A DNA stretch of 64,000 nucleotides from assembly GCA_023515725.1 (NCBI GenBank), contig JALDTO010000266.1, positions 2,108,762-2,172,761 of the forward strand, given 5' to 3'. This DNA comes from Amoeboaphelidium protococcarum X5. Taxonomy: Eukaryota; Fungi; Aphelidiomycota. Position 1 is the stretch's first letter. Each line of letters begins with the position of its first letter. The translations under genes were made by a program, and so were the position numbers. Below are positions 39,381 to 54,164 of the stretch, piece after piece. The notes under the pieces were generated by a model. That model did not search any database. It was not told where the DNA came from and saw only the letters and a list, made by a program, of their open reading frames with translations.

Positions 39381-40367
39381 TCATTGTTACCCATTATTAT
39401 CCTACTCTTCATTTATCTATCCAGCAGAAGAAGAACCGCCTGCACCAGCACCACCCATAGCGGCCATCAAATCTTGCAAATTCGGCATACCACCTGCTCC
39501 ACCTTAACCACCAGCACCGCCCATCATATTACCCAGCATTGACGCCATCTACGGATTAGACATCACCTACTAGGCCATATTCATAATCGCTGGATTGCTC
39601 ATCAGTGCGTTCAAGTCCATACCGCCCAGATTAGGTAATCCACCAGCAGCACCACCAAGCGGATTAGCACCCGGAGCAGATCTAGTACTAGATGTACCAG
39701 AACGAGCCTTCTAACGCGCCGTGGAAAGACTATTCTTGGTGACTTCATTCGATGGATCCAACTCTAGACTCTTCTCATACGCTTTAACAGCATCTTCATA
39801 CTTGCCCAGAGAGTAGTATGCTAATCCCAAACGACTGTACGCTTTCACAAACTTTTCATCAATTGCAATGGCACATTCACAATCCTTGATAGCATTCTCA
39901 TGTTGGCCCAACTGACTATAGGCAGCAGCGCGGTTGCTATAATACACTGGATTAGAGGCATCTAACTCAATTGCCTTACCATACTGTTCAATAGCTTCGG
40001 CATACTTTTTCTCCACCAGCAGCTGATTACCGCGCTTCTTCACCTCTTCAGCTTCCTTCTGCGTCTATGCCGATGACGAAGAAGATGAACCAGCAGCAGA
40101 GGACTCGGCAGTCTACTTCTAAGCGCCCTACTATGACTTTTGCATATTCAGATACACGTCAAAGATGGACTTTAATGAAGCGGGCTTGATGCTATACTTG
40201 GCAGCTTCAGTTTCCTCCATAACTCTAAAAGCTTCCAGTATGCACGACTTGGCAACACCCAGTGACTCTACGTCGTCTCCCGTTATAGCTCCGGAACTGA
40301 CCAGCTGATCCAAATACTCTCCAATCGCGACTGCTAATCTCTTGTCTTTATCATCCAATTCAGTCAT
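39381..40367 (-). CDS. SGT2: SGT2/SGTA TPR co-chaperone, 328 aa
   Basis: N-terminal dimerisation motif ESLGVAKSCILEAF, three TPRs (YYSNRAAAYSQ, KAYSRLGLA), Gly/Met-rich STI1-like tail (LMSNPAIMNMAQQVMSNP). Confidence 0.96.
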
Positions 40368-40733: not shown

Positions 40734-42572
40734 TCAGATAAGCCCTTTACTGTAAGGAGTTCCGGTCATGAACCAAACATCGTCAACGCGCCATTCGTGA
40801 CCAGCTTTATCATAATAATGTCCTTTTTGACCATGTTTAATGCCGCCTTTGCAATCATCAGGAGTCTCGACGTAATCAACCACATCAACAGTGTCCACTT
40901 CATTCAGAGGTTGCAATGCCTTGACATTGTCTCCACTTATGAAGCCTAAATCATGACCATAAAGTTACAGACACGCCTTAAGTTTAGGTAAGGACACCAT
41001 TACAGACTTGTCTTTAGGATTCGCAGATTTTTCAATACACAAGGGTTAAGCATCAGCTTCAATAGCTAGCTTATGCAGAGCTTCAAAACCATTCACCGCT
41101 TTATAGGACACGTTGGTAAAAGGACTCAATGTTCTATTACCAAACACTTCTTCGATATCAATTTAGCCATTTCCATTCATATCAGGCATTGCTAGCATTA
41201 CATCACCACCATCAGCTCCGGCATGTAGTTCAGTTACATTGCTTGGATCCAACCAGATACCTGTGCCAAACTTGACTTGAACGCGCCAATCATAGTTGAC
41301 ATCAAACACCAGAGGGGATGCACAACAACTACCAGCAGAATCTGGACTATAATCACCCATGTCCGGAGGAGGGGCAGGAGCAGAAGGAGGAGGCGGTGGA
41401 GGAGGCATCACAGGACTAGGAGGCTATCGAGGAGTATCTCTAGAAGGTGGACGTCTGTCTGGAGGTGGACTCCTGTCGGTAGGTGGGCGACGAGATGGAG
41501 GAGCATCCGGTTCAGCAGGCGGTTAAGGAGGACGCTCACGAGGTGGTGGAGGAGGTGGAGGTTAATTTGGCGGTGGTGGAGGATTAATAGGGGGAGATGG
41601 AGGAGTATCTCTAGAAGGTGGACGTCTGTCTGTAGGGGGACGACGAGATGTAGGAGCATCCGGTTCAGCAGGTGGTTAAGGAGGACGCTCACGAGTTGGT
41701 GGAGGAGGTGGAGGTTAATTTGGCGGTGGCGGAGGATTATTAGGAGGAGATGGAGGAGTATCTCTAGAAGGCGGACGCCTGTCTGTAGGGGGACGACGAG
41801 ATGTAGGAGCATCCGGTTCAGCAGGTGGTTAAGGAGGACGCTCACGAATTGGTGGAGGAGGTGGAGGCACATTAGGAGGTGGTGGAGTAGGTTCATCAGG
41901 AGTTGGTGGTGGAGGTTGCGGCTATCTTGGATTCCAGAAAGCAGGCGTACTAACTGTTAATGATGTAGTTACACTTGGCGAGGATGTCACAATAGTACCA
42001 GTGGACACTGCAGTTGTAGTAGAAACCTTATAAGATGACTGATACTTAGTAGAGGTAGATACAGTTGTATTCGTATATGTAGATGGGGTGCTAAACCAAG
42101 ACTAAATCACCATAGAAGATGGCGTCTCACCAGTTACTAAAGTAATCTTAGTGGTAGTAGTCAACATTTCTGTTGTATCAACTTAAGACGACGTACCAAC
42201 ACTACAAAAAGAGGAACTCGAAGAGACCTTAGTCTGAGTGGCAGGAATATCCAATGAAGTATTTTGATCAAGAGTTCTAGTGAATTGGCACGTTGCGCAA
42301 GGCGTGCTTTTAACAACAACCAGAGAAGTGGAGGAAATCGCGTGAGTTGTGACGCAAGTGGTAGATACAAATGTACGAGTACTAGCAGTAGAGGAGCAGG
42401 ATGTAGATGTTTGTTGACTTGCTTTAGGGGCACAAGATGCACAGCCATCAGGTCCACCACTAGCAGTTACATTGTCCCTCAAACGGCACTTGATCGCAAG
42501 ACCGTCGTTTGGCATCGCACGCGTAAACATCACAGCGGACGTTAAAAGCGAGCACAGTTTTAACAGTAGCAT
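40734..42572 (-). CDS. Secreted protein A, 612 aa: signal peptide, KCRLRD..CASC motif, S/T stalk, Pro-rich repeats, C-terminal FrpC-SPM-like domain
   Basis: One open frame with TAR=Gln; C-terminal 194 aa SPLVFDVNYD...DVMLAMPDMNGNGQIDIEEVFGNRT...NGFEALHKL...QKGHYYDKAG..VDDVWF. Confidence 0.85.
41430..41880 (-). repeat. Three coding tandem repeats of 153 bp (51 aa, Pro-rich)
   Basis: GAGCATCCGGTTCAGCAGG recurs at 41501, 41654 and 41807; unit PPPPPPTRERPPQPPAEPDAPTSRRPPTDRRPPSRDTPPSPP... Confidence 0.92.
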
Positions 42573-42932
42573 TATCGCTATTAAGTACAATGACAAACTT
42601 GAATGTAGAAAGATAAGCTGTGTGCTTGGTAGAAAATAGAAAAAGAGCAACATAACGATCAGTTACAGAAGTAGTTTAGGCAGGTCCAGAACACAAATTC
42701 ATCCTTGGCATTAGAATGATTGGCTGTTGGGTAAGTCAACGGCGGCTTGACCAACTAAAATCATTATCGACCATTTTGTGTAAAGATAATTCGTGTTGTA
42801 CTACTTCATCAAAACAAATCAGAGTTACACTACATTATCAAAGGAACACATGCGGATTCCTTGTATTCTGCTGTAATATAGTAGTGAAAAACTAACCCAA
42901 GCTTTAAATAAAAATCCTTACATAATTTAGCT

Positions 42933-43445
42933 TCAATCACAGAAAATGTGCAAAGTCTTCAAGGCTCTCTATAGTTGAAGAGTCTTACAACTCAATAAAT
43001 ATATATAAAAAATTCGTTAAACAGAAACGTACTCATTACTCATGCGCTCTTGGCCTATCAATACGGCCATTCTTTACCACAAAGGACATAGTTTCTCTAT
43101 CTGCCCGGGCGCGGCCAAACAGTACATAAAAATGCCAGAATCGGGAGCACAAGGCATCAGCGGTGCAATAACGGGACACAGAGCAGAATCAGGGCCAGAA
43201 GGGCCAGCAATGTAGGTATCTTCTTCAGTAGGCGTTAAGCAATCAGCAAAATTAGAAGCAGAACCAGCGTTGCCTTGTGTAGCCACTGTCGCCCCAGCGG
43301 GATGGCTTTTCACTTCATCTACACTCTAAGAGACGGCCCGAGCAAGCTATGAATGTATGGTCTCCGCACTTGTCGGGGAGGCTGAGAAGCATATGCAAAG
43401 CTACTAGGACCGCACTAATTACAAAAGTTATTTCCCGCGCACCAT
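42933..43445 (-). CDS. Hypothetical small Cys/Pro-rich protein; may be a frameshifted secreted gene
   Basis: Gene-like codon pattern in ADCLTPTEEDTYIAGPSGPDSALCPVIAPLMPCAPDSGIFMYCLAAPGQIEKLCP; a hydrophobic stretch (ITFVISAVLVAL, from ATG 43470) is one frame away. Confidence 0.35.
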
Positions 43446-52063: not shown

Positions 52064-52547
52064 AATTAATAGCTGAATTCACACGTAAAAAGGTTGACTA
52101 TATTTGCCTAAACTTTAAGCTAAGCAAGCATGAAAGGAAAGGGAGAAAATAGAGGAGCGGAAGAAAACGAGAGGAAAATTCTCATTCAGTACTATAGTTT
52201 TCACTCAGACAGTCAGTCACAGTACAGTGGCTTCAATGGAGAATAGGAGAGGAAAGACTGACGCGTGAATTGAAACGCCTCCAATTGATCAACTCAAGGA
52301 GATATGTTTCATATTGTTGATTTTCAGCCTCCCATGCTCGCAAAGAATGAATCTCCACTGTGGATAATGTTGAATGATTGGTCAAGCCGCTGAAAGGGTT
52401 GACATAATTGGTCAAGCCTTAGATTATCCCAACAGCCAATCGTTGAATACCATGTAATTAGCATTTTTCGGTCACATAAACTACTTTAGGTCACTTCAAT
52501 CACACAATACATTGTCCTTTTTCAACTCAGATATCGTCTACTTAAAA

Positions 52548-54164
52548 ATGTAATACCTAGTGTTGAAATTGTGCTCACTTTTAACGACTGTTGTGATCTT
52601 CACGCGTTCGATACCAAGCGAAGATCTGCCGATCAAATGCCGGTTGAGAGACAATACGCCTGCTGGTGGAGGACCTGATAGTTGTGCGTCCTGTACAAAG
52701 TAAGTCGTTGTAAGTGAATCGCCGTCTATACCCTGCTCTTCTAATGCTATTACTCTGGCATCTTCATCTACTGCATCCTCCACAGTCTAGGTGATTTCTT
52801 CTACGCCGAGCACAACTACTCTGGCTGTTGTGGAAAGCATTACTTGCACATCGTCGCAATTAATCAATACCTCTAGCTAAGATAAGACGTCTGCTATTCC
52901 AACTACTTAATCCAAGTTCACCTTATATACCTCCTCTCAAATCACTAGTTCATAGTCTAAGGTTGTTACAACCGAATACGGTTCAAAGTCTACACTGTCT
53001 ACTATTTATACCTCTACTACCGATTAGATACCCTCGTTAACTAAAACTTCCTCTAGCTTATTAAGTACTTCTGCTCACGAAAGTATTTTTGCTTCAACCT
53101 CTACTACTATAGCAGTGTCCACTACCACTGCAGTATCTACCCCTAGTACAAAGACTCGTCGTAAAATCCGTACATAACGTGTAAAGTCGTCTTAGTACTC
53201 TTCTGCTGCTTCATCTAGTACATTGTCCAAGACCAAGACTCGTCCAACTGCACCAACCACGGTGCGTACGACAACTTATTAGTCTATTCCTACCTTTAAG
53301 CCACTCGAGTCTTCCACAAAGGTCTCCAAGACCAAGACCAAGTCTACCACTTCCAAGAAAATGTCTACTTCTGTTCAGCCTCCTAAAACTACCACGAGAC
53401 AGCCTGTGATTACACCTACTTCCTAGAGGCCGTAAAACCCAATAACTGTACCTACACCTCCGCATCCTGCTAAACTGCCTGCGCCATTCTCATAGAAACC
53501 CTTAGTTCCCGCACCGCCTCCTCCACCTGCACCTGTAGCTGAAGAGCCACCTATGGACAATGGCAGTAGCTGCTGCGCATCCCCTCTAGTGTTTGATGTC
53601 AACTACGATTGGCGTGTACAAGTCAAATTTGGCACCGGTATCTGGTTGGATCCTAGTAATGTGACTGAACTACATGCCGGAGCTGATGGTGGTGATGTAA
53701 TGCTAGCAATGCCTGATATCAATGGAAATGGCTAAATTGATATCGAAGAAGTGTTTGGTAATAGAACATTGAGTCCTTTTACGAATGTGTCATATAAGGC
53801 AGCTAATGGTTTTGAAGCTCTACACAAGCTAGCTATTGAAGCTGATGCTTAACCCTTGTGTATTGAAACATCTGCTAATCCTAAAGACAAGTCTGTATTG
53901 GTGTCCCTACCCAAACTTAAAGCTTGTCTGTAAATGTACGGCCATGATCTGGGATTCATTAGTGGAGATAATGTGAAGGTATTGCAACCTCTGAATCAAG
54001 TGGATACCGTTGATGTAGTTGACTACGTTGAGACTCCGGATGATTGTAAAAGTGGTATGAAGCATGCACAGAAGGGTCATTATTATGACAAATCAGGTCA
54101 TGAATGGCGCGTCGATGATGTTTGGTTCATGACTGGAACTCCTTACAGTAAAGGTCTTATTTGA
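52548..54164 (+). CDS. Secreted protein B, 538 aa, paralog of 40734-42572: signal peptide, S/T/K stalk, short Pro tract, FrpC-SPM-like domain
   Basis: MQYLVLKLCSLLTTVVIFTRS..IKCRLRDNTPAGGGPDSCASC; the C-terminal 194 aa differ from paralog A at about 11 positions by my manual count. Confidence 0.85.

Follow-up and report, generated by a model that had tools for sequence, protein, structure and literature searches.

A Ser/Cys-Pro form of the FrpC self-processing module in a secreted protein family of the aphelid Amoeboaphelidium protococcarum

Amoeboaphelidium protococcarum, an aphelid parasite of green algae, encodes a family of secreted proteins that end in a domain from the SPM (self-processing module) superfamily, the superfamily to which the clip-and-link module of the bacterial RTX protein FrpC belongs; under the influence of Ca2+ that module folds, cleaves itself and forms an isopeptide, so attaching proteins to surfaces. 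The member described here lies in a 64-kb stretch of genomic DNA (the window), and both the homology of its domain to the SPM and the existence of a eukaryotic family are solid. In the founding structural paper the SPM is said to occur in some Gram-negative RTX proteins and nowhere else, and no report of a eukaryotic or a Ser-Pro SPM was found in searches of mainly open-access literature. The family places the SPM in eukaryotes. In addition, most of the SPM domains sampled carry Ser-Pro at the junction where FrpC has Asp-Pro, a prevalence that poses a biochemical question bearing on RTX biology and on SPM-based protein ligation tools. Aphelids, which are sister to Fungi, damage mass cultures of algae; the proteins are candidates for cyst building or host-wall attachment in these organisms, and their history appears to be a case of gene transfer from bacteria followed by expansion.

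The long frames of the window are open only when TAA and TAG are read as Gln, a code known in A. protococcarum (PMC5304391), and neighbouring conserved genes contain 12–37 such codons apiece. Read in this way, the SPM gene is an intronless coding sequence on the minus strand (40734..42572) with 12 in-frame TAA/TAG codons and a TGA stop. The first in-frame ATG, at 42653, would define a frame of 639 aa (40734–42653), which is used below for residue numbering. Met28 (42572) is probably the start, giving a product of 612 aa, since it is followed by a hydrophobic leader like that of the paralogues and since contigs from four public runs end at 42595–42611, just upstream of this ATG. These contigs span genes and not intergenic gaps; the runs bear no RNA label on record, and their RNA-like coverage only suggests that the gene is expressed. 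Bacterial contamination was rejected as the source of the gene, which uses the host code and has eukaryotic genes on both sides. A pseudogene was likewise rejected: the frames of all 27 family members are intact, contigs of the four runs span genes and leave out the gaps between them, and the paralogous domains are under purifying selection, with dN/dS values of 0.03–0.2.

The protein, all of whose elements are encoded on the minus strand, begins with a predicted signal peptide of about 19 aa with a hydrophobic core (42516..42572), followed near the mature N-terminus by the motif KCRLR (42477..42491). A mucin-like stalk comes next, consisting of about 50% Ser plus Thr (41937..42476), and then a Pro/Arg-rich stalk (41361..41936) that is 51% Pro and contains a 153-nt tandem repeat in 2.8 copies. 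The junction C-C-A-S-P (41313..41327) leads into the C-terminal SPM-fold domain of 194 aa (residues 446–639; 40737..41318). The signal peptide was called by eye and from hydropathy; a hydrophobic N-terminus is present in 27 of 27 paralogues and KCR in 23. The window protein has neither RTX repeats nor a C-terminal membrane or GPI-like tail. The preliminary description, made from the sequence alone, had placed an SPM-like domain on a signal peptide and a mucin/Pro stalk, and this architecture is borne out; the domain motifs that it quoted are present at 40737–41318 on the minus strand once TAA and TAG are translated as Gln. A search with the KCRLR DNA pattern returned matches at chance level. 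KCR(L/P)R-type motifs are kept in the aphelid copies, and an environmental homologue (P0027) displays four KCR copies.

Whole-domain searches made use of a stop-free paralogue (L009), whose domain has no TAA or TAG, and of an annotated orthologue (P0007), which is identical to the window domain at 187 of 198 positions (94%). The L009 domain matches the FrpC SPM over its whole length (PDB 6sjw and 6sjx, E 1.7e-8 and 4.1e-8). A structural comparison with the FrpC SPM, as proposed in the preliminary description, was carried out on an AF2 model of the P0007 domain (pLDDT 92.4): the SPM was the sole fold matched by Foldseek (E 3.6e-7, probability 1.0), and VIA-align superposed the two with a Z score of 13.5 over 150 residues (rmsd 3.7), the runner-up reaching 3.1. 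Among ESM Atlas clusters a Melainabacteria family lies closest (TM 0.86), and SPM clusters of PF26745 come after it (TM 0.66–0.69). Pieces of the window protein searched separately produced no Pfam, NCBIfam or PDB match, in a Pfam copy that lacks the PF26745 model, and precomputed PF26745 matches on close relatives are weak or faint only. Matches to EF-hands and dockerins reflect the Ca loops alone, and these identities were rejected. Membership of the SPM superfamily is confirmed by fold and by whole-domain sequence similarity. The FrpC motifs cited in the preliminary description differ from 6sjw in a single letter. Of the outcomes that it named as refuting, neither occurred: profile and fold similarity are present, and no broad spread across eukaryotes was seen.

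Two of the four FrpC Ca sites are kept, according to an alignment mapped on the FrpC residues (PMC7078468). Loop 1 (41286..41303, minus strand) comprises D451, N453 and D455, completed by D484, and is equivalent to FrpC D419–G424; its Gly has become Trp in the subfamily of this protein. The EF-hand-like loop 2, D491–E502 (41148..41183, minus strand), corresponds to FrpC D462–E474 and is intact, whereas the sites D499–D511 and D521–E532 are replaced. The first claim, that the Ca loop is retained, needs the qualification that no more than these two sites remain. The tryptophan pair W451/W519 is gone, Gly479 and Cys561 occupying its columns. The FrpC pocket residues D478 and D579 are represented by N506 (41136..41138, minus strand) and D625 (40779..40781, minus strand), in this order; FrpC tolerates D478N (PMC7078468), and at the column of D579 Asp is found in 109 out of 110 domains of the Ser, Cys or Thr type from bacteria. 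Aphelid domains possess a eukaryote-type Cys pair, C539/C561, and within the six-gene subfamily of the window gene C444 co-occurs with C601, a candidate disulphide that may tether the stalk to the head. A role for His607 as a Ser-specific base was not supported; it is a conserved and common His whose occurrence does not track Ser versus Asp, so that a dedicated general base was not identified.

The junction itself also departs from FrpC. Ser446 (41316–41318) takes the place of FrpC Asp414, and Pro447 that of Pro415. In a set of 131 domains (clustering at 70%), Pro is preceded by Ser in 88, Asp in 27, Ala in 7, Cys in 4, Thr in 3 and Pro in 2; Ser, Cys, Thr or Asp together account for 93%, counts that are not phylogenetically independent. 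Neither Asn nor Gly precedes Pro in any of the 131, despite frequencies of 6% and 10% at flanking positions, and at two columns of Ca ligands Asn and Asp replace each other freely; as the sequences are related, p-values for these contrasts serve as a guide only. An independent, more divergent sample (n = 19) comprises 14 Ser, 4 Asp and 1 Cys, again with no Asn. At least 11 exchanges between Ser and Asp have occurred on the tree, and the pocket was never lost. Among the 27 aphelid paralogues 20 have Ser-Pro, seven Cys-Pro and none Asp-Pro; the codons at this position are TCN, TGY or AGY, as would be expected were Ser and Cys the sole residues allowed.

Ser had first been described as standing in for the scissile Asp. 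It is not an alteration that arose in the eukaryote: Ser is the majority residue in sampled bacterial SPMs, including those of the closest kin, and Ser before Pro is inherited. Ser-Pro prevails in RTX SPMs as well, also in searches begun with an Asp-Pro query; in the Ser-type RTX SPMs every canonical feature is retained, and these modules stand after passenger domains. The companion proposal, that canonical Asp-Pro autoprocessing does not operate here, is upheld by the exclusive occurrence of Ser-Pro and Cys-Pro and by the behaviour of FrpC, in which D414A abolishes both cleavage and linking (PMC7846742). With two Ca sites and the Trp pair lost and Ser at the position of Asp414, the window protein is an SPM-fold protein outside the canonical clip-and-link class.

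Some observations on individual sequences may be recorded here. Ser-Pro, not Asp-Pro, is found in most of the sampled bacterial SPMs (P0111–P0150, P0159–P0273, L135–L163), those of RTX proteins with all canonical features included. Three bacterial proteins with cadherin domains (P0174, P0183, P0240) contain tandem SPM arrays with Ala-Pro or Pro-Pro junctions, and such repeats are probably non-cleaving. A member of the bacterial sister clade with Asp-Pro shows the same reduced fold as the aphelid domains. An environmental eukaryotic protein (L051, ENA ERZ19026022) has Asp-Pro and may be a eukaryotic case of the canonical chemistry.

The best database matches are proteins annotated as A. protococcarum; beyond these, the domain has relatives in about 85 bacterial clusters, mostly 36–51% identical and with the domain at the C-terminus. 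The relatives that could be placed in genomes belong mostly to Gastranaerophilales, Caenarcanum, Vampirovibrionales and other Melainabacteria MAGs, and a record labelled Gammaproteobacteria belongs to this GTDB class as well. It is in Vampirovibrionia (Melainabacteria), not in Neisseria, that the nearest kin are found, as SPM-like domains at the C-terminus. The RTX proteins of pathogens, with which the domain was first compared, are thus not its nearest kin. The subfamily is patchy, being found in 3 of the 251 genomes searched in the class. About 15 unnamed environmental proteins group with those of the aphelid; the carriers that could be traced are eukaryote-like contigs with the standard code and aphelid-like stalks, and their informative neighbours are IFT122, RNA polymerase, RPL7 or ArgRS. 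An RPL7 tree assigns one carrier to the fungus-related lineages, apart from both chytrids and Ascomycota and not firmly with aphelids. No named eukaryote other than A. protococcarum was recovered with the subfamily in these searches. Vampirovibrio, a predator of algae, belongs to the class some of whose MAGs carry it. MAGs titled Muribaculaceae, Gammaproteobacteria and Desulfobacteraceae also bear the Vampirovibrionia-type gene (L055, L057–L059, L083, L085, L086, L094–L096); these titles look wrong, since L094, the one checked, shares its GTDB class with a Vampirovibrionales MAG.

In a tree of 53 rows, from which long-branch, partial and tandem-array rows were left out, the eukaryotic domains form one clade (support 100/97) within the Vampirovibrionia-type group, which itself is separated from the RTX SPMs (100/100) and has a shared insertion and shared losses. 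Horizontal transfer of the module from bacteria is likely on this evidence, and a single transfer from bacteria to an aphelid-like ancestor would be the simplest reading. The free tree nests the eukaryotes in the bacterial clade in 200 of 200 bootstrap trees; an AU test does not reject bacterial monophyly with the eukaryotes as sister (p 0.26). The proposed acquisition from bacteria is supported by the tree, and nesting within the Vampirovibrionia-type group is unproven. An unsampled bacterium may have been a common donor, or the gene may have passed from eukaryotes to Vampirovibrionia. Both variants agree with the AU result, with the patchiness of the subfamily and with two close bacterial members (P0001, P0041) that are taxonomically unplaced, but the bootstrap trees speak against them, as does the superfamily's breadth in bacteria and narrowness in eukaryotes; taken together they appear unlikely, though far from negligible.

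The A. protococcarum family consists of 27 intact copies on seven contigs. A second paralogue within the window (52374..54164, plus strand) has a domain 94% identical to that of the first and a different stalk. Heads and stalks have evolved differently. Compared with its counterpart on contig C214, the window gene shows an N-terminal dS of 0.04 and a domain dS of 0.64, whereas the window domain (40737–41318) and that of a copy 30 kb away (L002/L024; G000:C264:2179885–2180481) have a dS of 0.03 and unrelated stalks; a head dS of 0.03 goes with a stalk identity of 40%. This combination indicates that heads have been exchanged or gene-converted between copies. Homogenised heads on variable stalks fit a generic anchor better than an adhesin tip that bears specificity. 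The life cycle of A. protococcarum involves attachment, encystment and host entry by appressorium and penetration tube (PMC3577820). The proteins may have a role in adhesion or in the cyst wall.

The reading that we place first, tentatively and at less than an even chance, is that the module serves as a generic C-terminal anchor, self-cleaving through an acyl shift at Ser or Cys, that attaches variable stalks to the wall of the cyst or of the host. After secretion, Ca2+ would fold the module via the two retained loops. Everything beyond this folding we infer. The junction would be strained in the conserved pocket (P447, N506, D625), by analogy with FrpC alone. An anhydride cannot form once Asp is replaced by Ser or Cys; the hydroxyl or thiol would instead attack the preceding carbonyl, in an N-to-O/S acyl shift at Ala445|Ser446-Pro, and the stalk, left as an ester or thioester, would be hydrolysed or handed on to a cyst-wall or algal-wall amine or hydroxyl. 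Variable glycosylated stalks could in this way be anchored by the module, in lieu of GPI or a membrane segment, in encystment and attachment. The sequence patterns point to a chemical role for the side chain preceding Pro, with a similar outcome for the host protein whether it is Ser, Cys or Asp. The acyl shift is narrowly favoured on account of the restriction to Ser, Cys, Thr and Asp, the absence of Asn and Gly, the codon pattern of the paralogues, the near-constant Asp at the D579 column of Ser-type domains, the canonical features of Ser-type RTX SPMs, and the Ser–Asp exchanges with the pocket kept, and the generic anchor also on account of the missing membrane or GPI-like tail, the homogenised heads and the diverging stalks. 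A precedent exists in NLRP1, whose autoproteolysis leaves an N-terminal Ser-Pro (PMC7483925). Several points count against this chemistry: no cleavage of a Ser-Pro SPM is reported in the literature searched, Ala or Pro stands ahead of the junction Pro in nine of the 131 domains, eukaryotic ones among them, two Ca sites are missing, as is the Trp pair, no base tracks the Ser, and a C444–C601 disulphide, if formed, would hold the stalk to the head.

Nearly as probable, and again less than even, is a head that does not cleave at all: a Ca2+-stabilised, disulphide-reinforced domain that binds the algal wall or wall proteins non-covalently, with Ser-Pro acting as a turn cap or Ca ligand. FrpC needs its Asp414 (PMC7846742), the aphelid domains have lost two Ca sites and the Trp pair and gained C539/C561 and possibly a C444–C601 staple, a covarying base was not found, and the tandem arrays of the cadherin-like bacterial proteins, with their Ala-Pro and Pro-Pro junctions, make it probable that the fold also serves in an inactive form. 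Were Ser-Pro a turn cap or Ca ligand, Asn would be expected too, and it is absent from all 131 and all 19 domains; Cys would not be expected to be favoured, yet it occupies the position in seven of 27 paralogues; and the heads are homogenised, not diversified. Another alternative retains the clip and dispenses with the link: Ca2+ and strain would cause plain hydrolysis at or beside Ser-Pro, shedding stalk or head with no covalent transfer. Shedding of this kind could serve, for example, the opening of the cyst wall. The invariant Pro persists along with the residues of the pocket, and FrpC has a Ca ion by which the carbonyl preceding Pro is polarised (PMC7078468); nevertheless FrpC D414A shows no hydrolysis, and a restriction to nucleophilic side chains would be unexplained if the Ser|Pro bond breaks, which makes hydrolysis alone improbable. 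Canonical Asp-anhydride clip-and-link has in its favour the common fold and the Asp-Pro members in the sister bacterial clade and in L051, but with no Asp-Pro in 27 copies and the nearest Asp of the window gene seven residues upstream of Ser446, the sequences effectively exclude it for the aphelid proteins.

The acyl-shift anchor invites comparison with known systems. The SPM of FrpC and ApxIVA (6SJW, 6SJX; PF26745) shares with the aphelid domain its fold, the order of its motifs, the Pro at its N-terminus, Ca loops 1 and 2, equivalents of the pocket residues D478 and D579, and an extracellular setting. The aphelid domain differs in being about 20% identical, in its Ser or Cys before Pro, in a helical insertion and Cys pair, and in its location at the C-terminus of a eukaryotic signal-peptide protein and not of a type I-secreted RTX protein. 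The Vampirovibrionia domains, undescribed so far, are much closer, with 36–51% identity, a TM of 0.86, the same losses and insertion, the C-terminal position and mostly Ser-Pro; by contrast, a signal peptide is rare among these proteins (2 of 71), RTX-like Gly/Asn repeats are frequent, an extra DxDGDG loop is present and about one quarter have Asp-Pro. The FIIND of NLRP1, of unrelated fold, has in common the proposed acyl-shift chemistry and the resulting N-terminal Ser-Pro. The fungal adhesins Als, Epa and Flo and the Pir proteins resemble the aphelid family in having a signal peptide, a Ser/Thr-rich stalk, a multigene organization and a presumed surface role. No homology links them to the aphelid proteins, which lack a GPI signal and have a globular domain at the C-terminal anchor position. 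SEA and GAIN domains, inteins and Hedgehog also autoprocess by Ser/Cys acyl shifts in unrelated folds, and the likeness is one of analogy only. A bolder reading, which we consider speculative and rather unlikely, is that Ser/Cys-Pro SPMs represent a second Ca2+-triggered clip-and-link chemistry, through an ester or thioester, that was taken from Vampirovibrionia-type bacteria and expanded by aphelids into covalent wall anchoring of cyst and attachment proteins.

The surroundings of the gene offer a few minor observations. Directly downstream lies an ordinary gene for an SGT/Sgt2-like TPR co-chaperone (39381–40367, minus strand), and upstream is a short Ala/Pro/Ser-rich frame (42933–43445, minus strand) that is covered by the run contigs. 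A CCAAT-box-like element is common to the upstream regions of both window paralogues, at about 42715–42735 and 52395–52415, and TGATTGG is found upstream of several further copies of the family too.
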